A program made the position numbers and the translations under genes. Shown piece after piece: positions 1,787 through 58,165 of a stretch of 64,000 nt of DNA. The stretch lies in assembly GCA_043228905.1 (NCBI GenBank), contig JBHGNT010000004.1, positions 15,066,001 through 15,130,000 of the forward strand. The letters are read 5' to 3'. Below the pieces are notes generated by a model, which was not told the DNA's origin, did no database searches, and worked only from the letters and a program-made list of their open reading frames with translations. Source of the DNA: Azolla caroliniana (taxonomy: Eukaryota > Plantae > Polypodiophyta). The stretch's first letter is position 1, and each line of letters starts with the position of its first letter.

Positions 1787-1990
1787 TCTCCCTCCCTTTC
1801 ACTCACTCTTTCCTTCCCTCGAGAGTTCTTCACCTCTCTTAGTACTAATACTTCTTTTAGTACTAATTCCTTCTCTGTCTTAGTATTGTTCCTGAAAGTT
1901 TGAATCAATTTTGGTCGATCTTCCTTCTATATCTTCCTTTCCTCCTATTTCTTTTATCTTCTTATTAATCCTCTTATCCTCCCTAGTAAA

Positions 1991-3133
1991 ATGGAAACTG
2001 TTAGCGCTCAGGAATACCAATCTGTTTTCTCGGAGCTCCAGTGCTTAAAAGTGAAATTTGTAGCACTAGAACAAGAAAATCATTGTTTGTTGGGGGATCT
2101 TCAACAAATAGCGCTGGAAAAACAACAACAACATGGGGAGCTGACGTTACGTGTACAACAACTCGAAGCGACTATCATATCATTACAACAACAAGGATCA
2201 AGCACTCAAGGGATTCACAAAGAACCCAAGATCGGTCTTCCTGCAAAATTTGATGGGACTCGATCACAGTTTAGAGGATTTTTGAATCAGGTACGTTTAG
2301 TGATACAAATGCATCCTTCTTGATATCCCACCGATGCATCACGAGTGGGACTAGTAGGCACTCTCCTTAGTGGCTCAACGTTAGCATGGTTTGCTCCATT
2401 GTTGGAAAAGGAATCTCCATTACTAAATAGTTTTGAAGAATTTATAAGTGAGTTTAAGGCCTGTTTTGGAGATACTGACAGCATAAGGACTGCAATCAAC
2501 AAATTCCGGCAATTACGCCAAGGTGATCGTCCAGCCTCCGCATATGCTGCAGATTTCCGCCTACTCGCTGCTGATATCCCTTGAGATGATCACGCATTGA
2601 TGGAGCAATTCCGTTATGGCTTACGCAACGATGTCAAGGATTTACTCTTGACCTTCCCCGAAGAGCCAAAATCATTAACAAAAGCAATTAGTTGCGCGGT
2701 GAGATGCGACAACCGCCTCTTCGAACGACGTTCGGAACGACAATTCCAGATTCCGAGGGTAAGATCAGAGCCTACCTACGCCTCAGTGGTAGCAAAACCT
2801 TTTCCGAGGGAGTCATATAATGTGCCTCCAGTAAGTACTCCAACTCCGATGGAAATTGACACCACACGTCGTCGTGGACCTCTATCAGAAGAATAAAAGC
2901 AACGACGTCGAGCAAACCGACTATGTCTTTATTGCGGTGGACCGGGGCATATCGCGGTAAATTGTCCCCATAGGCCAAGAAGGCAGGTAAACCAAATAGT
3001 TGCTAGTTCTAATTGTACTAAACCCGAGTCTATTTCAGTAGGGATATTTGATAGTCCTAATAGTACTAATAGCCCAAATCTAGCGAACAAATTTGATGTC
3101 CTTAGTCAGTTAGAGGAAGAGTTAAACGACTGA
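1991..3133 (+). pseudogene. gag of gypsy A (premature stops)
   Basis: EPKIGLPAKFDG, WFAPLLE, LRQGDRPASAYAADF, PMEID and CLYCGGPGHIAVNC, broken by stop codons. Confidence 0.85.
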
Positions 3134-3760
3134 GTCCAGCCAAAATAGGAGTCGTTTGGTTGGACAACCCTAGATCTGTGCAGCCCATTAGTGGTTCCAT
3201 TCCCTCTAAGCAAGTTAGTTATGTGTTCGTAGCCCAAGTAACAGTTAGTACTAAAAGTACTCCTCCAGTACATGTCTTAGCACTTCTAGATTCCGGAGCT
3301 AATTCTTGCTTCATAGATAGGAAATTTGCCCAAGCTCATCAGATATCTCTCAGAAAACACCCGTGTCCTGCCTCTGTAGTAGTCATTGATGGTCGTCCCA
3401 TTGCTTCCGGAAATATCATAGAAGAGTCAGAGCCCGTTAATATTGTCCTAGATAATCTAGCATGTGTCGTATCATTTAATATAATTAGCATCCCAGAACA
3501 CCCCATTGTCTTAGGATTACCATGGTTCGAATTACATAACCCAGTCATAGATTGGTGGACAAGAGAAATCCGGCATCGAAAAGCCCGAGGGTCTACTCAT
3601 GAGATTGCAACGATTTCACTACATCAGTTGCATGAGGAAGGACGCAAGGAAGAAATGTTCCTCTTTGCAATATCAGTAAAACCCTCCAGCACCACCAAAT
3701 GTTGGGAGACAGGTCCCTCCGGATGGGAAGGGAGAAGAACAATGCCGATGAACAAACTCA

Positions 3761-42940: not shown

Positions 42941-43690
42941 AGTGTTATCGTACAAGATGTACGGAGAGTTGAGTGTTATGGGTGAGGGTTTAAGACTATA
43001 ATGTTGTTGTTGTGTATGTGTAATGTATGAAATTACGACTGTGAGTATATCTAAATTGTTTGATTTTAATTCTAAATTATTAGGTGTTAAGTCTAAATTA
43101 TTTGACGTCTTTTTTTCGGTATCCCCTTTCTTTGTACTTGAATAACTAAGATTAGATTCTATTATTTTTAGAAAAAAATTGTTAAATTCCATAGGATCTG
43201 GAACTATCCATAACTTCAAATCAAAAATTGAATTTATCTTCATTTTTTATTCGTTATTTTTTTGTTGATAAAATTTTCTTGCATATGCTATTTCATTAAG
43301 ATAACCAATATCCTCAACATCAGGAATATCTTCAATATCACCAATTCTAGAAAATTTTGATATTTCTGGACACGTGTGCATGTGGACAAATAAGAAGAGG
43401 TGTGCGTGAGTGATTAGTGTGGATGGCTAAGAGGGCTTGCACCCCTATGTATCTACTCCCTCTTTGTACTATTTAACCCCCTTATGGGGAATGAATGGAA
43501 CATAAGAAAATATTTCTCTCTCTTGTCATCATTTTCATTAACCCTAACCCAAACCAATAACAATGTGAGCTCTCGATACCGGAATTGGCTTGATGCTCCA
43601 CGACATGTGTGACACCATGAAGGTCACCATGGGTTCCACCATCGTAGGGTTAGCACACCCTATTTCGCAAGGTGAGAAGGCAAAAGCCTT

Positions 43691-45192
43691 CCCATGACTC
43701 TCAAGCATCTTTTATCCTCGAGAGGTAGGAAGTCACCCCCACCAATCTCGACCTTCTGTAGCGTTTCATCGGTGAACTCGTGCCCTATGTTGTGCAAGTC
43801 TTGTAAGCTTGGATAAACTACAACCCCTTTCATCTGCTCCTAGCCATCCCATGACTCTCAAGCATCTTTTATCCTCGAGAGGTAGGAAGTCACCCCCACC
43901 AATCTCGACCTTCTGTAGCGTTTCATCGGTGAACTCGTGCCCTATGTTGTGCAAGTCTTGTAAGCTTGGATAAACTACAACCCCTTTCATCTGCTCCTAG
44001 CCATCCCATGACTCTCAAGCATCTTTTATCCTCGAGAGGTAGGAAGTCACCCCCACCAATCTCGACCTTCTGTAGCGTTTCATCGGTGAACTCGTGCCCT
44101 ATGTTGTGCAAGTCTTGTAAGCTTGGATAAACTACAACCCCTTTCATCTGCTCCTAGCCATCCCATGACTCTCAAGCATCTTTTATCCTCGAGAGGTAGG
44201 AAGTCACCCCCACCAATCTCGACCTTCTGTAGCGTTTCATCGGTGAACTCGTGCCCTATGTTGTGCAAGTCTTGTAAGCTTGGATAAACTACAACCCCTT
44301 TCATCTGCTCCTAGCCATCCCATGACTCTCAAGCATCTTTTATCCTCGAGAGGTAGGAAGTCACCCCCACCAATCTCGACCTTCTGTAGCGTTTCATCGG
44401 TGAACTCGTGCCCTATGTTGTGCAAGTCTTGTAAGCTTGGATAAACTACAACCCCTTTCATCTGCTCCTAGCCATCCCATGACTCTCAAGCATCTTTTAT
44501 CCTCGAGAGGTAGGAAGTCACCCCCACCAATCTCGACCTTCTGTAGCGTTTCATCGGTGAACTCGTGCCCTATGTTGTGCAAGTCTTGTAAGCTTGGATA
44601 AACTACAACCCCTTTCATCTGCTCCTAGCCATCCCATGACTCTCAAGCATCTTTTATCCTCGAGAGGTAGGAAGTCACCCCCACCAATCTCGACCTTCTG
44701 TAGCGTTTCATCGGTGAACTCGTGCCCTATGTTGTGCAAGTCTTGTAAGCTTGGATAAACTACAACCCCTTTCATCTGCTCCTAGCCATCCCATGACTCT
44801 CAAGCATCTTTTATCCTCGAGAGGTAGGAAGTCACCCCCACCAATCTCGACCTTCTGTAGCGTTTCATCGGTGAACTCGTGCCCTATGTTGTGCAAGTCT
44901 TGTAAGCTTGGATAAACTACAACCCCTTTCATCTGCTCCTAGCCATCCCATGACTCTCAAGCATCTTTTATCCTCGAGAGGTAGGAAGTCACCCCCACCA
45001 ATCTCGACCTTCTGTAGTGTTTCATCGGTGAACTCGTGCCCTATGTTGTGCAAGTCTTGTAAGCTTGGATAAACTACAACCCCTTTCATCTGCTCCTAGC
45101 CATCCCATGACTCTCAAGCATCTTTTATCCTCGAGAGGTAGGAAGTCACCCCCACCAATCTCGACCTTCTGTAGCGTTTCATCGGTGAACTC
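43691..45192. repeat. 157-bp tandem array, 9 full units plus an 89-bp partial unit
   Basis: Units start at 43691 + n*157; only one substitution noticed (~45017). Confidence 0.97.
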
Positions 45193-45620
45193 TAGCCTCA
45201 CCTTCCGTCCATCGTCTTATACCTGGTGTTACAATCGACTGTCTAGTTCTCCCTGGCTATCTATCCGAACTCCTCAATCACTTCATACATATATACAGGA
45301 TGCCACATGGAATGGTGGGGGTTGAACCCATGACCTTCTGGTCTTATTGGGCAACCTTACCAATTGAGCTACATCCATCTATGCATTATTGTATTGTGTA
45401 AGACTCAACTTATTTCATTATAGATTGATCACTAGAACTTTCAAGAACCTTCTAGAGAATGCATCTTCATGCACTCTCTAGAAGTTTCCATGCACTCTCT
45501 AGAAGTCTTCTAGCTTTCATGCATACCTCCACATTCTTGTATAAATATTGGGGTGCACCTTGGTTACAATCAAGGTGAACAACACAAGTTACGAAAGCAT
45601 ATACAGTTCTTGTTTATTTC

Positions 45621-48600
45621 TGTAGAGAGTAACGTGCGGAAGCAAGTATGAAGACCAAACAGAAGGGAGGAAACTCAGGTTTAATGGAGAGCTTGAGCTT
45701 ACACAGTATACGCAGGAGAGACAGAGAGAAGGAAACACAAAAAACTATATTCAACACTTTATTCACCACTCTCTATACATATGTGTGTTCAATGAACACT
45801 TTTATACAAGTCCTAGAAGGACTGACTGAAGTACTGACAGTACTTCAACACTCATTAAGAGCTCCTACACTAACTCCCAAATATATTCCTCACGGAATAT
45901 CTTTCCTAACGGCCTCCCGGTTTACGCACTCGGCCTAACCGATCGGTCCCAACCGATCCGGTCCTCGGCTTCTTCAGCCGATCCGGCCGATGTTGAGCTT
46001 GTCTCTCAACACTCCCCCTCAAGCTCAACTTGAGGCTCTTCGGGATCTTCGGGCTCACAGCTCCGGTTCCTCCTGGCTTCACGCCTAGCTCGCGCTCCTC
46101 GACCTGTTCGACTCCGCGCACTTCGACCCTTCCGGTCGGCTTGTCTGCTCATGTGGCCCTTATCAGCTCTTTTGTTGTTGCGGTGTTGACGCTTCTCCTA
46201 CTGCCTTTTCTTCTGCTTGGGCCTCGGTTGATTCAGTGTATCTGAATCAAACATCCGAACCAACTTGGCTACCACTGATGGGTTTTCGCTCTCATCCGAG
46301 TTGGCTGTCTCCAACTCGTCTTCGGTCTTCTCGCCCTCGATGGCGTCATCTCCCCCATGCGTGGTTGGCTTCGGCTCTCTCCTTCGGCTGCTCCCCTTCT
46401 GTCCACTTTCGGCCTTTTCCGCGGGTCCGCCCTCGTCGAACTCGACAACCGAGTCCACCGACTCGGACTCGATGTCACGGTCTCCGCTCCTTTCCTGCTG
46501 CCTTGCTTGGTTGTTTGGGACTATTCTCCCCCTCAAGTTTGGCACGTTGAGGTGACGCAATCCGAGCGCACCTGAGAATTGCCGCAACTTGTCTAGACCA
46601 AGAGGCTTTGTGATGATGTCGGCAGCCTGCCGATCCATCGGCACGTACTGAAGTTCGACTTCACCGGACAGGACACGCTCACGGACGAAATGGTAATGCA
46701 CCTCAATGTGCTTGGTCCGTGCGTGGAAGACAGGGTTCTTCGCGAGCTGGATACTGCTGAGGTTGTCGCAGTAGATCGTCGTCGGATCTAACACCTCCAC
46801 TTGCAGGTCCTTAAGTAGCCGCTTCAACCATATGGCTTCGCATGTCGCGACAACCGCTCCTCGGTACTCAGCTTCGGTGCTCGACAGTGCAACTGTCGGC
46901 TACTTCTTATTGCTCCACGCGATCGCGGCACTCCCGAGGGAGAACGCGTATCCGGACGTGGATCAGCGATCAGCAGCATTGCCAACCCAATCAGCATCGG
47001 TGTAGCCGACTAACCGCGCGGCTGCACCAGTCCGATATAGCAGTCCCCGGTCCTTAGTGCCGTTGACATACCGAAGTATGCATTGCGCACATTGAAGGTG
47101 CTCCTCGGTAGGTCGCGCCATGAACTGACTGATCACTCCGACCGGATAACTGAGGTCGGGTCGGGTGATGGTCAAGTATATGAGGCTTTCGACGATTTGT
47201 CAGAACCTCGTCGGGTCGCATACCTTTCCCGTATCGGGACGAAGCTTGACGGTCCTGTCTAGAGGAGTCGAGACGGACTTACAGTTGGCCATCCCGAATT
47301 TGAAGAGCATACTCAGCACGTAATGGCGTTGGCTGATCAATATGCCTTCGGGGGTACGGATCACTTCGATCCTGAGGAAGTAATGAAGGTCCCCCAGATC
47401 CTTCATGTCGAACGATGCCGCAAGCTGGAGCTTCACGCGGTCGATTTCACCTAGGTCGGCACCGGTGATGACCAGGTCATCAACATATAGTAGAATACTA
47501 ACCGGTCCGAGTCGACCTTTCCGGATGAACAGGGAAGAGTCCGATTTTGACGTGACGAAGCCCATCCAACGCAGTTGTTGCATGATCTTCGCGTTCCAGG
47601 CACGCGGGGCTTGCTTCAGTCCGTAAAGGGACTTCTTCAGTCGGCAGACTGCCGAGGAGTTCGTTCCGGAGTGAAATCCGAGGGGTTGTACCATGTACAC
47701 TTGTACCTCAAGGTCACCTTGCAGGAACGCATTCTTTACATCCATCTGATGTAAGTGCCACCCCTTCACCGCAGCTACTGCGAGCAAAACACGGACGATC
47801 GTCATTTTCGCGACCGGCGCAAACGTCTCATCGTAGTCGATGCCGTGTATCTGCGCGTAGCCCTTTGCCACTAGCCGAGCCTTGTACCGATTGACCGAGC
47901 CATCGGTGTTATACTTGACCTTGTACACCCACCTACACCGGATCGGTTTTACCCCTTTTGGTGCGTCAACCAGGTCCCAGGTCTCGTTCTCCGCCAATGC
48001 GTGCATCTCTTCCTCCATCGCGGCACGCCAATTCGCGTTTTTAGCCGCTTCTGCGTAGCTCTCCGGCTCACGCACTTCCGCTACACGGGTCATGTACGCA
48101 TAATGATGCGCCATGTACTCGTTGTATCCGAACCGCACAACTGGGTTCTTTTGGCGGGTAGATCGGCGCAATCTCACATTAGCCGATGTCGAGGCCTTCT
48201 CGGTCGACGCGGTCTTCATCTTTAAAGACCCATCACCGGTTCCCTCGGAGTCGGACTCGCGTCGGTCTGACTTGTTCCTATTCGTGCCGGAATCCGACAC
48301 CTTCTTCTTCCCTTTCTCTTCACGCGTAAGCCGTCTCCTCGGCTTGCTACGCGGGGAATGCACGGCCGAGTCTCCACTACTCGTTGACTCTTCATCGGAC
48401 TGGTCGTACCGACTCAGTCCACTTAACCGGAGTGAGATCGGACTCTCTTCGCGGGTCTCGATTTCGGGCTCATCTGGAGGCATCTTGGCCTCGCTGACCT
48501 CATCGTCAGAGCTCGGATTGGGGGCAGGGTTCGGAGACGGGGGCAGGTACCAGGACGCGGACTCGTCAAACACAACGTCGCGGCTGACACGCGCTTGTTT

Positions 48601-51278
48601 GGTGCGAGGGTTATAGCACTTATAACCCTTCTGCTCGTCCGAGTAACTGACCAAGATGCATTTCTCGGCCTTTGCGTCCAGCTTCCTCCTTTTCTCCTTC
48701 GGTATATGCACATACGCAATGCTACCGAACACCCTCAAGTGTCGCAGGTTCGGCTTTGTTCCGAAATATTGCTCGTGCGCTGACACTTTGTCTCCGATCC
48801 GGTTCTGGATGTATACCGCGGTCCTTACCACCTCGGCCCAATAGAACTTGGGCAAGCTCTTCTCCTCCAGCATTGCCCGTGCTGCTTCCACAACTGACCG
48901 ATTCTTCCTCTCGGCCACGCGCGTTCTGCTCCGGCGTGTATCTGCAACTGAATTCGTGCCGAATTCCCATTTGTTGTAGATAACTATTGAATTGACCGGA
49001 AAAGTACTCTTTCTCGCCATCCGACCGCAAGCACTTGATCTTTCGTCCCGTTTCCGTTTCCACGAACCCTTTGAGGTCTCGGAAACAGTCGAAGACTTCG
49101 CTCTTCCTCTCAATGAGGTTGATCCACGTGTGCCGCGTGTGGTCGTCGATGAAGGAGACAAAATATCGGCTCCCGCCAAGACTAACGTTTTGTGCCGGCC
49201 CCCATACATTGGAGTGTATAAGGTCGAGCTTGTTCCAGCTCCAGTTTCGCTTGTTGGGGAAGGGAAGTCGGTGTTGCTTCCCGAGCTGGCAGGCTTCACA
49301 AATTTGTGCCTTTCGGCTACTAAATTTGGGCAAACCGAATACTACCTGTTTCGATTACAGATCTTGAAGCCGCTAGTAGTTGACGTGGCCTATCCGCTTG
49401 TGCCACAAGTCGATGTCCGACTTGGCTTTTTGTCCCTTCGCGAACATTGCGGTGCCACCGTCAGTGGAATCGAGGATGAACATCCTCCCACCTCTGCGCC
49501 CTTGCGCAATCACACGGCCTTCTTCCTCAATGAAGCACCTGAGGTGTGTGAACCGAACCTCCATCCCTTGGTCGACGATCTGTCCGATCGAGACCAAGTT
49601 TTTCGTGATTGTCGGAACGTGCAACACGTTCATGAGTTTCCCTTTCTGCCCGACATGGCTAAGGGGAACTTCTCCGACATTCGCGATCGGATGTGGAGTG
49701 TCGTCTCCAGTTGTGACTACTCCAGGTTGTATCAGTTTTTCCAGGTACGAGAACCACCCCTTATGGCTCGTCATGTGGTTTGACGCGCCGGACTCTACGT
49801 ACCACACCTCGTCCGATCTCGGGGTGCTATGTTTCATTGAGTTTGCTTCGTGTCTCGACACGAAGGCAGACCCTTCTCCGTCTCTCCCGGAGTCTTCGGC
49901 GTAGTGCGATCGCTGCCGATTTCCCTTGTCGGTATGTTCGGAGCCATTTCCGGAGCCGGTTCTCTCCAAATCGGCGCGCTTCTTCCAGCACTCACTTTCC
50001 CTGTGGCCTTTCTTGCCACAGTACCAGCACTTCGCGATGGCCTTCCCTTGCCGGTTCCCATCGCTTCGACTCCCCCTGTTTCCGGAGGGTCCGCAGTTGC
50101 TGTCGGCGTCACTTCGATGCCTTCTTCCTTGATCTCGTCGACCGCTTCCATTGCGTACCGACTCACCTCGTCCGCCACGACCACGGGGCCTTTCTCCCTC
50201 CATGTACAACATCTTGTTGTCGGTGTGCGTGCTCGTCGACGCACCCGCATGGTTCTCCTCTACCAGGAGCATTGACTGTAGGTCGAAAAAGGACGGCGTA
50301 TTCTCCCGGGTACACACAACCGTTCGGAACGCTCCGAACTTCGACGCCAGACCTCCGAGACAGTTCTGGACCATCTCGCTCTCCTCGATGTTCACCTCTA
50401 TGGAGGCGAGGGAGTCGCAGATATCCTTGATCTTCGAGGTATAGTCCGCCACCGACAAATCGCGTTGTCGTAGGTTGCTCAACTCCTGTCGGAGCTGAAG
50501 CTTCCTAGCTGTGGTGCTCGCGGCGAAAATCTTCTTCAGATTTTCCCACGCACCCTTCGGCGTCTTTGCATCCCGAACATAGCTCAATAGTTGTTTGCCC
50601 ACACACGACGCGAAGAAGTATAATACCTTGCTCGCCGATTGCTCCCACGACGGGAAGTCTCTGTGTGTCGATTCGGGTGCCGCGTCATTAGCTCCTTCGA
50701 CATAACTCCAGTAGCCGTGCCCGAGCAGGTACTGGTGCATCTTGTAGGACCAAGACGCTTAGTTGGTTCTGTCGAGCTTCTCTATTGGAAGTGAGCTCGC
50801 CATGCCTCTATCCATCATTCTTCTTGTTCTTCTTCGTCAAGCTGTGTCGGCTGCAGAGAAGTTCTCAACCCTCGCGCTCTGATACCATGTAGAGAGTAAC
50901 GTGCGGAAGCAAGTATGAAGACCGAACAGAAGGGAGGAAACTCAGGTTTAATGGAGAGCTTGAGCTTACACGGTATACGCAGGAGAGACAGAGAGACAGA
51001 AACACAAAAAACTATATTCAACACTCTATTCACCACTCTCTATACATATGTGTGTTCAATGAACACTTTTATACAAGTCCTAGAAGGACTGACCGAAGTA
51101 CTGACAGTACTTCAACACTCATTAAGAGCTCCTACACTAACTCCCAAATATATTCCTCACGGAATATCTTTCCTAACGGCCTCCCGGTTTACACACTCGG
51201 CCTAACCGATCGGTCCCAACCGATCCGGTCCTCGGCTTCTTCAGCCGATCCGGCCGATGTTGAGCTTGTCTCTCAACA
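45621..51278 (-). mobile_element. Copia H: full-length copia with 391-bp LTRs
   Basis: LTRs 45621-46011 and 50888-51278, TSD ATTTC/ATTTG, Met PBS (rc) 50876-50887, PPT (rc) 46012-46025. Confidence 0.95.
46198..50815 (-). pseudogene. Copia H gag-pol with stops and a frameshift, plus a charged C-terminal extension
   Basis: CWYCGKKGHRESEC, WYVESGAS, integrase, LYVDDL, YCDN..KHIEVHYHF across ORFs 49373-50740, 48722-49333, 47200-49299 and 46198-46827. Confidence 0.88.
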
Positions 51279-51441
51279 ATTTGTCTATCCTCTCTCTTGC
51301 TTGTTCTCTTGTCTATGCTCTCTCTCCCGTTATCTCTTAATATTGAGCCTCCTCTACTTGTTTGTGACAATCTTGTGATCTTGCTTATGCTCTCCCTCGC
51401 TCTTAGTACTTAGCCTCATTCCACCCGTTCGTGACAGTTTG

Positions 51442-51797
51442 TTCACCTTGTAGTACAGCAAGACAGAGAGCTTCACGTTCTTCTTCTTGTGCTTGATCTT
51501 CTTCGACTGTGTGTATGTTTCTTCTTCCTTTTCTTAGCCCCACCGCGCAACCGCAACACGAGATGGAGAGTGGATTCCTTCTGGATGTTGTAATCAGCTA
51601 GGGTTTGTCCATCCTCAAGCTGCTTCTCGGCGAAGATCGACCTTTGTGTTCCGGGGGCATCCCTTCCTTATCTTGGATCTTGGCTTTGACATTGTTGATG
51701 GTATCGGAGGATTCTACCTCTAAAGTGATGGTCTTACTAGTTAAGATTTTCACGAAGATTTGCATCGTGTCCTACAGTCGAAGCTCTAGACTTTTCC
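51442..51797 (-). pseudogene. RPS27A: 3'-truncated ubiquitin-RPS27a (eS31) fusion retrocopy with short 5' UTR
   Basis: ATG at 51765: [81 protein letters not shown]; two frameshifts. Confidence 0.92.
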
Positions 51798-53838
51798 TTC
51801 ATGACAGTTTGTTCACCTTCCCATTTTCTAAGCCTCAACATGTCGGATCTTACCGAGAGAATAAATCACCTCATGGCAGCCATGCATCAACTTCAACTTG
51901 AGAATGACAACCTTCGGTAATCGTTACTGAAGCTTCAAGTTGGAACACCGATGGAACTCGAAGAAAATAACAACTCTCCTACATCGACAAATGTTCTAGC
52001 TATAGAGCCTGGTTCCTCGTCTATGCTTTCTCTGACTCCTTCCCATCCCACTACAAGTATGGATCCCAATATTAGTTTACCTGACAAGTTCGATGGCATG
52101 AGGAAGCACTTCTGAGGGTTCATAAATCAGATCAAGCTTATTATCCAACTACAACCTCAATGGTATGCGGATGATTTTCGTCAAGTTGGTCTCATTGGGA
52201 CCCTTCTGTCCGGAGCTACACAAGCCTGGTTTGCACCATTGGTCGAAACTTCATCACCACTTCTACAAAATTTTCCTGCCTTTCTAGCAGAGTTTGAGGC
52301 AACATTTGGGGATACGGGCCGACGCCGAACTGCCATCACCAAACTCTATTCATTACATCAAGGTATGCGTCTGGTATCCGTTTATGCCTCTGAATTTAGA
52401 CAATTAGCATGTGATGTTCAGTGGGATTGCCAAGCTCTTTGCGACCATTTTCGTCGGGGACTTCGAAGCGAGATTAAAAATTTACTTCTCAACTTTCTGG
52501 ATCCTACGTCATTGTCGCAAGCCATCACACGCAAGCAGTTAGTTGTGACAATCGGTTGTTTGAGCTTCGTCAAGAGGAACGAGCAACTTCAAGGTGGAAA
52601 CCCTCTTCGAGATCTTCTCCATCATCATCGTACGATGACCCCGTGCCAATGGAAATTGATCGAGCTCGCGCCCCGCCACTCACCGAGGGTGAACAGAGGT
52701 ATCACCGAACCAAGGGACTATGTTTATATTGTGGTGTATCCACCCATCTCATTCGTTTTTGCCCAATCAAGAATAATCAATGACTAATATCTACAAACAA
52801 GACGACAAGACGACCCTAACAACAGGAAAACGACAGTGTCCAACTACAATAGGAGCCATGTGGTTGGACAATCCGCATTCGTGTCGCTCCCATAGTTCGG
52901 CTACATCGATAAAGGATTTCTCCTTTCCGGGAAGCCTCCATTTCAAGTCGATTTCAATTAGATCCTTAGCACTTCTAGATTCCGGGGCAACAACGTGTTG
53001 TATGGACGAACGGTTCATTCATAAACACAAATTCCCAGTTGTCCGGTTGTCCAAGCCAATCCCAGTGGAAGCTATCGATAGACGCACGCTTTCTTCGGGA
53101 GCAATCACCGAAGCCACTGTCCCACTTATCTTACAGCTCGGGGACCACCAGGAGGCCTTAACGTTTTATGTTATCACTTCACCGCGACATCCAGTCATCC
53201 TCGGTTTGTCTTGGCTGAAGGCACAAAATCCACTTGTTGATTGGCGCAATCATTCGATTACTTTCTCCCAAACTAGCTTGGAGGTACAAGCAATATCTCA
53301 TGTTGTTGCAGGCGCTCACCCTCCCATTAATGCAGGAATAAAATCCAAGGCAGATGCTCACATCCCAGTCACAACAAGGAAAATAGTGTAGTGCCTCGTC
53401 CAACAATCCAATGAGGACAACTACTGGCTCACTACCGTCCAAGTATGAAGGCTTCAAGGACATATTTGAGAAAAAGAATGTTGATCACTTGCCTGAGCAT
53501 CGATGCTATGACTGTTCGATCGATATGCAAGAAGGTGCCAATCCTCCCTTTGGCCCAATTTATGGGTTGTTGGAACTAGAACTCCAGGCACTCCGAATGT
53601 ATCTCGATGAGAACCTTGAAAAGGGTTTTATTCAACACTCAAAATCATCAGCAGGAGCTCCTATTTTGTTCGTGAAAAAGAAAGATGGATCCTTACCCCT
53701 TTGCGTCGACTATCGGGGTCTAAACAAGATTATTGTTTGCAACCGCTACCCACGGCCTCTCATCCCAGAGCTTTTGGATCGACTCCGGACTGGGATGATC
53801 TTCTCTAAGATTGACTTATAGGGAGCATACAATTTGGT

Positions 53839-53966
53839 CCTAAAGCCACTATAAAAAGAGGAACGTGATATTATCAAGAACCAAATCGGTTCAACGCCAA
53901 TCTTAAGCCTCCTCGTTGTTCTTGTATCTTTCTTCTTATAATATAATATACTTCTTGTTGTTATCA

Positions 53967-54023
<57 letters not shown>

Positions 54024-56594
54024 CACGTGGTTCTCACACACTCTTTCCCTTCTTAGGACTAATCCTCATTCTTTTCCTCTACCTTTAGTACTAATTCTCC
54101 TTGCCTCTAGTATTGTCCCTGACAGTTTGAACCGATTTTCCTCTTCAGCTTCGTATCCCTCCTTCCCTTCATACTAATCTTCTTATCCTTCCTTCCTCCA
54201 ATACTATGACAATTGTTAGCACTCAAGAATACCAATCTGTTTTCTCGGAGCTGTAGTGCTTGAAAGAAAGGTTTGTCGCATTGGAACAAGAAAATCAACG
54301 GTTGTTGGGGGATCTTCAACAAATCTCTTTAGAAAAGTAGCAAGCGCTACAACAAATGGGGAGTTGCAACAACAACATGGGGAATTAGTGTTACGCGTGC
54401 AACAACTTGAAGCAACCATTGTAGCATTGCAACAACAAGGATCAAGTACTCAAGGGATTCATAAAGAGCCCAAGATCGGCCTTCCTATGAAATTCAATGG
54501 AACGCGAACACAGTTAAGAGGATTCCTTAATCATGTACGATTAGTCATTTAAATGCATCCTTCCCGATATCCCACCGATGCATCACGAGTGGGTCTAGTA
54601 GGCACATTACTGAGCAGCTCAGCTTTGGCATGGTTCGCTCTGTTGTTGGAAAAAAGTTCTCCCCTACTAAATAATTTTGAAGAGTTTATAAGCAAGTTTA
54701 AAACCCGTTTTGGAGATAATGATAGCATAAAGACGACAATCAACAAAATCCGACGATTACGTCAAGGTGATCGTCCAGCCTCCGCTTACGCTACAAATTT
54801 CCGTCTACTCGCTTCCGATATCCCCTGGGATGACCAAGCATTGATGGAGCAATTTCAATACGGCCTATGAAATGATGTCAAAGACTTACTCCTAACTTTC
54901 TCCGAAGAACCAAAGTCGCTCACAGAAGCAATCAATTGAGCGGTACGATGCGATAACCGGATTTTCAAATGATGTTCGGAACGCCAGTTAAAAATGCCAA
55001 GGACTAGGTCAGAGCCCACATACACCTCGGTCGTAGCAAAACCATTTGCAAGGAAGTCATATCATGCATCTCCGGCAAATACTCCAACACCGATGGAAAT
55101 CGACACCACACGTCGCCGTGGACCATTGTTGAAAGAAAAAAAAGCAACGACGCCGAGTAAATCGATTATGTCTTTATTGTGGAGGACCAGGGCATATCGC
55201 AATAAATTGTCCACATAGGCCAAGCAGACAGGTAAATCAAATAGTTACTTGTACTAAACCTGAGTCTATTTCAGTAGGAGTGTCTGATAGTCCTAATAGT
55301 ACTAATAGCCCAAGTCTATCAAACAAATTTGATGTCCTTAGTCAGTTAGAAGAAGAGTTAAATGACTAAGTCCAACCAAAATAGGAGCCGTTTGGTTGGA
55401 CAACCCTGGATCTGTGCAACCCATTAGTGGTTCCATTCCCTCTAAGCAAGTTAGCAATGTGTTCTTAGCTCAAGTAACAATTAGTACTAAAAGTACCTCA
55501 CCAGTACATGTCTTAGCATTCCTAAATTTCAGAGCTAATTCTTGCTTCATGGATAGGAAATTTGCCCAAGCTCATCAGATATCCCTAAGAAAACTCCCTT
55601 GTGCAGCCTCCATAGTAGTCATTGATGGTCCTCCCATTGCTTCTGGAAATATCATAGAAGAGTTAGAGCCAGTTAATATTGTCCTAGATAATTTGGCATG
55701 TGTAGTATCATTTAATATAATTAGTAGCCCAGACCATCCCATTGTTTTGGGATAACCATGGTTCGAATTACATAACCTAGACATAGATTGGAGAACAAGA
55801 TAAATCCAATATGGACAAACTCGATGATCTACTCATAGGATTCCAACCATTTCGCTACTCAAACCGTATCACGACAACACTATTTCGAATCGTATTATAC
55901 CACCTCCACCCTCGATCGAGCTTGAAGCAGAACCAGAGTACGAAGTATCTACCATCCTTGATTCCAAGATTGTTTGCAACAAGCTTTACTACTTGGTTGA
56001 TTGGTTGGGCTATAGCCCAAGTGAGCGTACTTGGGAACCAGTCGAGAATGTGGCAAATTCTTGAGCTCTTGTTGAGGACTTTCATCGACGATATCCCGTC
56101 AAGCCAGGCCCTCCATCTAAGATGACTCGTAGCACTCGTCGTCTTAAGGGGGAGGGGGGGGTTAGTGTCATGATATAGCATGATATGGCATCATATGGCT
56201 TTAAAAGGATTTGAACCCATGACCTTGTGGCACGTGGGCAAAAGCCTTACCATTAAGCTATAAGTTGTAATACAAAAAATATTATTTCCATTTATTATTT
56301 CACTTAGGAAATCCACGTATATTCTAGATTTCTCTAGAACATTCTAGAAATGTCAAGAGTATTCCTAAAGCCATTATAAAAAGAGGCACATGGCATTATC
56401 AAGAACCAAATCGGTTCAACGTCAGTCTTAAGCCTCCTAGTTGTTCTTGTATCCTTCTTCTTATAATATAATATACTTCTTGTTGTCATCATTATCTCTC
56501 TCTCTCTCTCTCCTCTCATGTGGTTCTCACACACTCTTTCCCTTCTTAGTACTAATCCTCATTCTTCTCCTTGCCTCTAGTACTATCCCTGACA
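53839..56594 (+). mobile_element. Gypsy I: internally deleted Tcn1-like element, relative of gypsy A
   Basis: Truncated 5' LTR 53839-54124, 3' LTR 56166-56594; gag and protease closely similar to A; RT-RH-IN missing at ~55810; chromodomain remnant ~55930-56090; G-rich PPT. Confidence 0.9.
54125..54139 (+). promoter_or_regulatory. Self-priming PBS GTTTGAACCGATTT, complementary to AAATCGGTTCAA ~30 nt after the LTR TATA box
   Basis: Direct reverse-complement match to 53883-53894. Confidence 0.82.
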
Positions 56595-56750
56595 CTCATA
56601 TGTGTGGTTTTCATGCAGGGAATCCATTTCGTTATACATGGCACTTATCCACTTGCAGCTGTGGGTGTACCTCTTTGCTTCCTCAAAGCTTTCTGGCTCC
56701 TCCTTGTCGGTTAGCAGCACACACTCTTCTTTCGAAAATCTACGAGTGTT
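56595..56750 (-). mobile_element. Short Tork-like copia fragment related to copia E
   Basis: VLLTDKEEPESFEEAK..KWISAM..EMDSLHENHTYE. Confidence 0.8.
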
Positions 56751-58165
56751 GCTATATCGGACTGGTGTAGTCGGGCAGCTTGTCGGCCACACTGACGCCG
56801 ATTGGGCCGGAAATTCTGGGGACCGCAGGTCTACATCCGGTTATGCGTTTTCACTTGGAAGTGCCACGGTTGCCTGGAGCAGCAAAAAGCAGTCGACAAT
56901 GGTGTTGTCAAGCACCGAGGCCGAATATAGAGGAGCGGTTGTCGTGACATGCGAAGCCATTTGGCTCAAACAACTATTGAAGGATCTGCGAGTGGAGGTG
57001 TCCGATCCGACGACGATTTACTATGACAACCTTAACAACATCCACCTGGCAAAGAACCCTGTCTTCCAAGCCGGACTAAGCACATTGAGGCGCACTACCA
57101 TTTTGTCCGTGAGCGAGTCCTCTCTGGTAACTTGTGGAACTTTTGCATGTTCCAACTGATGAGCAACTTGTTGACATCTTCACCAAACCCTTAGGTCTTG
57201 ACAAGTTGCGGCAAATTTCGGGCATGCTTGGTCTCGAACACCTCGATATGCCTAACTTGAGGGGGAGAGATAAAGCCGAGAAGGAAGATGATGTCCGAAA
57301 AGCCGAATTGGATGATGAATTCGATTTTGGACCAACTGAAGAAGCCAGAATGTTTAGATCGGTTGAAGAAGATGAGGATGAATGGACATGTGCAGAAAGA
57401 TCGGCCAAGTGGAGACTAGTCAGACGCAGGGGGGGCGGCCACAAGGGAAAGCCGAAACCGGAGCCAACCGAATCGAGGGATGGAAAAGCCGAGAAAGGCA
57501 AGAGAGGCGACAGAGTCGAAAATGACAAAGCCGACCGAGCGAAGGCCAAGACCAAGACATGGGCAGATGTAGTCAAGGGCCGAAAGGAGGACGAATCGGA
57601 GACAACCGATTTGGACAAGGGCCGAAACAATTCGGTCAAAATGTTCAATTCAGAGGAGCCGAATCGATTGGCCAATGGGACAAGAGGGCAACCGAAGTCG
57701 ACGCTGACACGGAAGAGCCGACGGGTTGAGGAGCGCCAATACCACGACAACGAGGGAGTTGACATGGGCCAAGGGAGCAGACAAGCTGACCATGAGGGTC
57801 GAGGTGCGCGGCATCGAACGGGTCGAGGAGCGTGAGCAAGGCGTGAAGACGCCATGAGAAGCTGACAACAAGGGTCGGGAAAGATAGACACGATGAACCG
57901 ACCTCAAGTTGAGCTTGAGGGGGAGTGTTGAGCGAACAAGCTCAACCTGATCCAGATCAGCTCTGTAAGCCAGAGTCGGATCGATATTTGGAAGAAAGAA
58001 CCGGATCGATATCTGGAACCAAGAGCCGGATCGGAGTGTAATCGGTAGGCCATTAGAGACCTACGATCCTAGTCTAGTACGTAGGCATATTTTTAGGAGT
58101 TAATGTTAGTCGCTCGGTACAAGCATTGAAGTACTTGTCAAGTACTTATGTCGGTCCTTCTTTAA
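56750..58165 (+). mobile_element. 3' end of a copia of family H (RNase H, charged extension, PPT, truncated LTR from 57926)
   Basis: TDADWAG..RRSTSGY..STEAEY; TTGAGGGGGAG|TGTTGAG. Confidence 0.85.

Follow-up and report, generated by a model that had tools for sequence, protein, structure and literature searches.

How does an antisense fragment of a cellular message come to lie exactly at the primer-binding site (PBS) of a long terminal repeat (LTR) retrotransposon? The question is raised by a decayed chromovirus in the fern Azolla caroliniana (assembly GCA_043228905.1, contig JBHGNT010000004.1, positions 15,066,001 to 15,130,000 of the forward strand), which between its 5' LTR and its gag gene carries part of the ubiquitin-eS31 (RPS27a) message, flanked on both sides by a copy of the PBS. 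The stretch of 64 kb that was analyzed is referred to below as the window, and all coordinates are positions in it. In the answer that we favor, and to which we give about an even chance of being right, the plus-strand strong-stop DNA of the element was mis-transferred, inside the particle, onto a look-alike ubiquitin-eS31 mRNA and then rejoined the element.

The foreign insert comprises 352 nucleotides (nt; 51450-51801) of antisense ubiquitin-eS31 sequence, running from the YYKV codons back through ubiquitin to approximately 36 nt upstream of the ATG. Pfam searches of the minus strand matched ubiquitin residues 1-37 (E 8e-11) and, in a second frame, residues 38-72 (E 2e-10). The eS31 piece gave no Pfam match, and its identity was settled by a PDB sequence search, in which residues 80-109, ending in YYKV, matched the plant eS31 8auv_N (E 2.5e-6). 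These matches, together with the exact 18-nt repeat described below, bear out an earlier reading of the locus, here called the sequence-only reading, in which an antisense RPS27a copy had been placed at a duplicated PBS. The copy is without the last third of the coding region and without the 3' untranslated region (UTR), the message itself continuing DDSGKVQRLR, and the 3' side of the copy bears neither an A-run nor a poly(A), as that reading had also noted. Upstream of the ubiquitin ATG, the first 36 nt of the insert in minus-strand sense are without a reading frame. The two frame breaks in the copy are private 1-nt deletions, with RNA-like contigs having an extra letter behind 51518 and 51646. 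The parts of the insert and its borders are as follows.

51432-51449, plus strand: left copy of the 18-nt repeat, made up of TGACA, GT and the PBS TTGTTCACCTT at 51439-51449; within this PBS, CACCTT (51444-51449) is common to the mRNA codons AAG GTG.
51450-51538, minus strand: N-terminal extension of eS31 (AKKRKKK...LLYY), with a private 1-nt deletion adjoining 51518.
51539-51765, minus strand: ubiquitin coding part, with the ATG at 51765-51763 and a private 1-nt deletion adjoining 51646.
51766-51801, minus strand: putative 5' UTR of the captured mRNA, of 36 nt, or of 32 nt if TTCA belongs to the duplication.
51802-51819, plus strand: right copy of the 18-nt repeat, with the second copy of the PBS at 51809-51819; it is preceded by TTCA, where TTCG is canonical.

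The repeated 18-mer, TGACAGTTTGTTCACCTT, has two exact occurrences in the 64 kb, namely the two copies listed above, and shuffled sequences gave a chance expectation of 0.08 matches even when three mismatches were allowed. It is composed of the last five nt of U5 (TGACA), the spacer GT and the 11-nt PBS. When the preceding TTCG/TTCA is included, the repeat extends to 22 nt with one CpG-type mismatch; the duplication of about 22 bp described in the sequence-only reading is thus exact over 18 nt and attains its full length only with this mismatch. The structure of the insert at both junctions was read from the genome assembly alone. An assembly artefact was considered but seems unlikely, an exact 18-nt duplication around a decayed pseudogene being atypical of a misjoin.

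Public metagenome contigs were searched with a 20-mer (PBS plus 3 nt), which gave 22 matches, 15 of them to plant retroelement contigs and the remaining seven unrelated. Three IMG/VR matches to a 19-mer were likewise set aside as chance, since neither an LTR context nor the primer motif is present in the unrelated contigs that contain them. Eight of the 15 plant contigs are of the host family, and the others represent at least five further LTR families, in which the PBS is the same. In pairwise comparisons of the copies, all eight outside members of the host family were empty, with a single PBS in the order ...CCGTTCG-TGACA-GT-PBS-CCCATTTTC...ATG. In addition, 51431 is joined to 51802 in one contig of the DNA run X3, the two sides having 18 letters in common. 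Because the outside copies and the X3 joint show the empty form, the insert is the derived state. Read depth over the insert is far below that of the flanks in the DNA runs, where the contigs of the eS31 part carry the letters of the parent gene, and there is no sign that the insert-bearing element has amplified.

The host copy is 95.6% identical to its intact relatives; of the 111 changes, 61 are of the C>T or G>A type in the host copy, and decay has affected 28 of its 117 CpGs. The combined C>T and G>A decay amounts to ~2.7% in the insert and ~2.4% in the host, which is compatible with, though weak evidence for, an equal age of the two.

The position of the insert gains its meaning from the way in which the host element appears to prime reverse transcription. 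No PBS for a tRNA 3' end (no TGG...) adjoins the host LTR, where TGACA is followed by GTTTGTTCACCTT, whereas a neighboring copia element has the classical TGGTATCAGAGC. The host PBS is the exact complement of 45572-45582, and nowhere in the LTR does the PBS region have a longer complement. The self-primer so defined starts 32 nt after the start of TATAAATA, the TATA box of the LTR, with 24 nt lying between. The same arrangement (TATAAATA-24 nt-AAGGTGAACAA), together with the same PBS, was seen in every outside contig reaching far enough, that is, in 10 LTRs of at least five families. In a further LTR family of the window, called B, which provides a control for self-priming, primer and PBS co-vary, the R start AAATCGGTTCAA pairing with the PBS TTGAACCGATTT after TGACA-GT. 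The proposal that the element primes itself in the manner of Tf1 and Tcn1 is thus upheld by an exact 11-nt complement of the PBS 32 nt downstream of TATAAATA. In Tf1, it is the first 11 bases that pair with the PBS, and the cut made by RNase H falls between bases 11 and 12 (PMC7175516); plant chromoviruses of the Tcn1 clade are predicted to be self-primers like Tf1 and sushi (Neumann et al., PMC6317226). As judged from the sequence features tested, the host element is a self-priming chromovirus of the Tf1/Tcn1 type and fits the plant Tcn1 clade. In the standard scheme, plus-strand strong-stop DNA ends after copying of the primer (PMC13191261), and for the host element this end is predicted at 51449.

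Two further observations concern the primer region. A 10-bp inverted repeat, CACCTTGATT-AC-AATCAAGGTG, lies just upstream of the predicted transcript start (window 45550-45582, and contigs L005, L007, L009, L014 and L019). It is present in every LTR family, its right arm being the first 6 nt of the self-primer, and its left arm is a repeat of the PBS in its 3' part (in some families TTCACCTT). U3 thus ends in a PBS-like copy that might act as a competitor for the primer or influence the shape of the 3' U3-R RNA. An older relative of family B in the window (1856-3626; 1892-1915) has the PBS TTGAATCAATTT, two transitions from TTGAACCGATTT, which points to decay and not to a new primer pair.

The parent message could be followed in run X21, which is RNA-like, with a depth of 12,000-59,000 over 51444-51748, of 0 on gag and of almost none on the high-copy LTRs. 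The depth on the insert agrees with the claim that the captured mRNA was an abundant one, the ubiquitin-eS31 message ranking with the most abundant ones of the cell. The X21 contigs differ from the copy by ~5-6%, and their alignment ends at 51444. Beyond this point the message reads, in mRNA sense, TACTACAAGGTG and then, across the junction, GACGACTCTGGG (YYKV DDSGKVQRLR); the loose end of the contigs is TACTACAAGGTG followed by GACGACTCTGGGAAGG..., and at the junction the real mRNA reads AAGGTGGACGAC (AAGGTG-GACGA). AAGGTG is therefore common to the X21 message and to the PBS complement, as had been noticed for the codons TAC AAG GTG, and the left junction falls in the real mRNA at AAGGTG(G)AC, where the sequence-only reading had expected it. 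The exact 24-mer across the mRNA junction gave no match in public metagenome contigs. The X21 alignments fade towards the ATG, in the most strongly mutated part of the copy, and the low depth over 51749-51809 is uninformative.

The resemblance of the message to the self-primer goes beyond the six shared letters. Every one of the 11 PBS positions finds a partner in the message site AAGGUGGACGA, nine in Watson-Crick and two in G.U pairs, and the predicted duplex of this site with the PBS reaches -13.2 kcal/mol, as compared with -14.1 kcal/mol for the true primer. The site is the best PBS-pairing site in the 388 nt of the mRNA known, and by our own calculation the five further pairs beyond the shared letters have a chance of ~1 in 32. 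Mimicry of the primer by the mRNA, as envisaged earlier, accordingly involves the same 11 nt. A probable genomic contig of a relative (X10 record 9) is collinear over 51444-51743 and has no intron there, the UTR lying outside its coverage. Since the parent seems intronless over the captured coding part, a DNA and an mRNA template are indistinguishable for that part.

If strong-stop DNA was indeed mis-transferred, the course of events might have been as follows. The first 11 nt of the element RNA (AAGGUGAACAA) would pair with the PBS and prime the minus strand, and the plus-strand strong-stop DNA would then end in ...TGACA-GT-TTGTTCACCTT-3'. Its 11-nt tail would miss its regular partner, the PBS complement at the minus-strand 3' end, and would anneal to the co-packaged, very abundant mRNA at AAGGUGGACGA. 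Reverse transcriptase (RT) would copy the mRNA to, or near to, its 5' end, giving the 352 nt of antisense sequence, and the nascent end would rejoin the minus strand 18-22 nt upstream of its point of departure, possibly via TTC microhomology. After rejoining, the end of U5 and the PBS would be copied again, followed by the leader and gag. Integration of the looped product would have followed, with replication or repair then fixing the looped strand. In this scheme we infer that the mRNA was packaged, that the jumps came in this order and that RNA served as template.

The start of the insert coincides with the expected end of the strong-stop DNA, within the 6-nt overlap, and the left PBS copy carries the letters of the element at both discriminating positions, as it would if the primer had been DNA ending in the PBS. 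That the copy is antisense, 3'-truncated, 5'-long and tailless would follow from copying that ran from an internal site to the 5' end, and an RT that meets an unmodified primer RNA is known to continue as far as the 5' end of that RNA (PMC13191261). At the left junction the match is perfect over 6 nt, or extends over 11 nt with two wobble pairs, and at the right junction there is only TTC microsimilarity.

Several points weigh against mis-transfer of the strong-stop DNA. The insert lies in an otherwise continuous element and has a duplication of 18-22 nt at its borders; Tan et al. score that signature as insertion into a pre-existing element, LTR-mediated retrocopies replacing internal sequence (PMC5131818). 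The return jump to a point 18-22 nt upstream needs a special account, either a looped plus strand or a minus strand that extended past the PBS. An RNA origin is not borne out by the loss of an intron, since the contig of the relative is collinear over 51444-51743, and the 6-nt overlap leaves ~7 candidate priming positions. The host is without its 3' half and without the canonical first 4 nt of the LTR, so that a normal integration of the chimera has to be presumed. Finally, no second capture at a PBS was found in the window or in the 15 outside copies. The whole case is carried by a single locus, and one case cannot prove mis-transfer.

The flanking duplication is what lends weight to target-primed reverse transcription (TPRT), of the type used by long interspersed nuclear elements (LINEs), into an already integrated element. 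In this event, a plus-strand nick within or just after CACCTT would leave a 3' end that anneals to the mRNA-internal AAGGUGGACGA instead of to poly(A), the LINE RT would run along the mRNA as far as its 5' end, and a target-site duplication (TSD) would result from a second nick, 18-22 nt upstream. A duplication of 18-22 nt round a continuous element is the textbook signature of TPRT, besides being the criterion of Tan et al. (PMC5131818), and is here explained without special pleading. TTCG/TTCA is moreover a CpG-to-CpA change, the commonest decay in the copy, which makes an original TSD of 22 nt plausible. The letters of the element at the left PBS copy do not separate the two readings, as a nicked chromosomal DNA end predicts them likewise. 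LINE copies, however, normally keep their poly(A) end and lose their 5' end, and the present copy, which has no poly(A), is truncated at its 3' end and long at its 5' end, shows the reverse of this habit. The L1 endonuclease prefers T-rich/purine nick sites, and judged by this preference there is no such site at CCTT/CC. A priming end this close (a few nt) to the edge of a self-priming PBS would, by a rough estimate, be expected in ~1e-4 to 1e-5 of insertions, and the five extra pairing positions beyond AAGGTG would be a 1-in-32 coincidence. A LINE-made retrocopy had been named as the alternative in the sequence-only reading; the duplication and the left-hand letters agree with it, but the missing poly(A) and the 3' truncation do not, and we consider it unlikely, if still deserving of serious attention.

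The preferred explanation of that reading was another one, in which the mRNA itself would have paired in trans with the PBS, undergone the same cut as the self-primer and started the minus strand, to be copied later to its 5' end. Trans priming between Tf1 RNAs was reportedly described by Haag, Lin and Levin in 2000. The duplex of mRNA and PBS would have the same 11-nt extent as that of the true primer and nearly the same stability, and RT runs to the 5' end of primers that are unmodified (PMC13191261). What is found in the left PBS copy nevertheless speaks against priming of the minus strand by the mRNA. Since A in the primer corresponds to G in the message, TCGTCCACCTT is predicted for this copy, whereas TTGTTCACCTT is observed (TCGTCC expected vs TTGTTC). 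From the decay rates of the copy itself, two C>T changes restoring the letters of the element would have a probability of ~0.12 x 0.05, or ~0.6%, and a rescue would need a cut after no more than 6 nt, contrary to the rule known from Tf1, or else a heteroduplex corrected by mismatch repair; priming by the mRNA is thus improbable in our view. An origin at the DNA level, for which the seemingly intronless parent gene over the captured coding part (X10 record 9) and the microhomology at the left junction may be adduced, would start from a break or staggered cut near the chromosomal PBS, followed by microhomology-primed copying of the ubiquitin-eS31 gene as filler DNA and by duplication of the overhang. 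The copy, however, ends ~36 nt upstream of the ATG, which is a typical 5' UTR length, a duplication of 18-22 nt is unusual for filler-DNA repair, and the positional coincidence with the PBS edge is the same as in a LINE-type event, so that this origin seems very improbable. On balance, we are slightly inclined to regard the primer-mimicking mRNA as a decoy for second-strand transfer in the particle (or, less likely, as the primer itself), and the locus as the product of a PBS-anchored capture route.

Among known systems, LTR-mediated retroposition by template switching (Ty1 of yeast, Bs1 of maize, Drosophila, vertebrates; PMC5131818) is alike in that a partial copy of a host mRNA without poly(A) lies in an LTR element, with microsimilarity at the fusion point and a capture presumed to occur in the particle. 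The known cases replace internal sequence, arise by minus-strand switches and are in sense orientation, whereas here the copy is antisense, nothing is lost and 18-22 nt are duplicated. The entry point at the PBS edge, the end of the plus-strand strong-stop DNA, is also unlike that of known LTR-mediated retrocopies. The event works like LTR-mediated template switching but fails the structural signature of that class. With the self-primers of the Tf1/sushi-Tcn1 group (Levin 1995-98 in PMC7175516; PMC6317226) the host shares the 11-nt PBS and the lack of a tRNA-type PBS, and its relatives carry a chromodomain and a Tf2-1-like SH3 domain; the literature accessible to us does not mention that these elements capture cellular mRNAs at the PBS. 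Over-extension of the primer (tRNA read-through without m1A58; PMC13191261) likewise places antisense, RNA-derived sequence directly 3' of the PBS, with reverse transcription to the 5' end of the RNA. It differs in that the RNA here is an mRNA, whose 3' 5 nt were not copied according to the letter test, and which would have been an acceptor rather than a covalent primer. Processed pseudogenes made by LINEs (L1) resemble the locus in their target-site-like duplication of 18-22 nt and in being cDNA-like copies of highly expressed genes, and differ from it in that the present copy has no poly(A), is 3'-truncated and not 5'-truncated, and would have been primed internally via 6-11 nt of pairing.

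The host element and its nested neighbors are made up of the following parts.

45287-45620, plus strand: part 1 of the 5' LTR of the host chromovirus, with U3 and the start of R; TATAAATA at 45540-45547.
45572-45582, plus strand: predicted transcript start and self-primer AAGGTGAACAA, in part 1 of the host LTR.
45621-51278, minus strand: nested Ty1/copia element, a later insertion that splits the host LTR (self-BLAST, Pfam, flanks).
51284-51436, plus strand: part 2 of the host 5' LTR (R/U5), ending in ...CCGTTCGTGACA.
51820-53837, plus strand: leader (21 nt), gag (ATG at 51841) and protease of the host, decayed by stops and frameshifts; Pfam Retrotrans_gag and RVP_2.
53838-56590, plus strand: LTR element of family B, which abuts the truncated host and lies outside the capture; its 5' LTR is without the first 12 nt.

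Part 1 of the host LTR shows 96-99% identity to the LTRs of L005, L013, L016, L020 and L022, and part 2 shows 95.9% identity to seven outside copies. The single LTR previously drawn at 50888-51436 is thus not continuous, the host LTR consisting of these two parts split by the copia element. The LTRs of the latter are 391 nt long and 98.2% identical, its PBS being the TGGTATCAGAGC mentioned above; it has a target duplication (ATTTC/ATTTG) and the Pfam domains RVT_2, copia gag and Pol_BBD. Other copies are uninterrupted at the copia site (...TTCTTGTTT-ATTTG...). The first 4 nt of the host LTR differ from the canonical TGTC terminus; in relatives, the canonical LTR start TGTCA directly follows the polypurine tract AGAGGGAGGA. 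Host gag and protease are 94% identical to those of L005, L016 and L018 up to 53838, where homology to intact relatives ends. The host copy in the window keeps only gag and the protease (PR), its 3' half being gone, and the relatives L019 and L016 encode gag and PR-RT-RH-IN-SH3_Tf2-1-Chromo. The LTRs of family B end in the same TGACA, which in their 3' copy is followed by unrelated flank.

Some features of the surroundings were recorded in passing. The junction of the host with family B (53837/53838) is non-canonical, the 5' LTR of family B being without its first 12 nt. The left flank of the host (TTCAT, 45282-45290) and the right flank of family B (CTCAT, 56591-56596) match at four of five positions, which may be due to chance (a few percent) or may hint at a recombinant of host and family B that was integrated as one unit. 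A near-perfect tandem array (43685-45241), with a period of 157 nt and ~10 copies that are 99.2-99.8% identical, adjoins the host LTR on its upstream side. An antisense tRNA-like block beginning TGGAATGGTGGGGGTTGAACC (45308-45377) is located ~20 nt inside the LTR and is kept in outside copies; ARAGORN found no tRNA gene in 45000-57000, and the block at the LTR start is thus not a canonical tRNA.

The contigs L005-L022 come from public 'metagenome' assemblies (ERZ10343xx-ERZ10344xx), which hold many chromovirus contigs of this plant, some of them apparently intact; plant host DNA is therefore abundant in these samples. Contig L019 contains two LTR-PBS units (at 2686 and 7637), 4951 nt apart, with an intact gag and a pol of 1183 amino acids between them. 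Its coverage of 62x is ~10x that of sister contigs, and it may represent a tandem array, a circular form or the assembly collapse of a very active family.

The capture of host messages by LTR retrotransposons is known from sense replacements that arise via minus-strand template switches. If the copy at the Azolla PBS was made by a LINE instead, it would be only an unusual, internally primed retrocopy at a striking place. If the mis-transfer of strong-stop DNA is true, the locus would be the first natural fossil of a misdirected plus-strand transfer, and it would provide a natural read-out of the strong-stop DNA end in a plant chromovirus. Self-priming retrotransposons would then pick up the 5' parts of host mRNAs in antisense and anchored at the PBS, and the messages open to capture would be given by a testable rule, namely those with a primer mimic. 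The short self-primer system of the Tf1/Tcn1 elements would thus be open to look-alike cellular RNAs.

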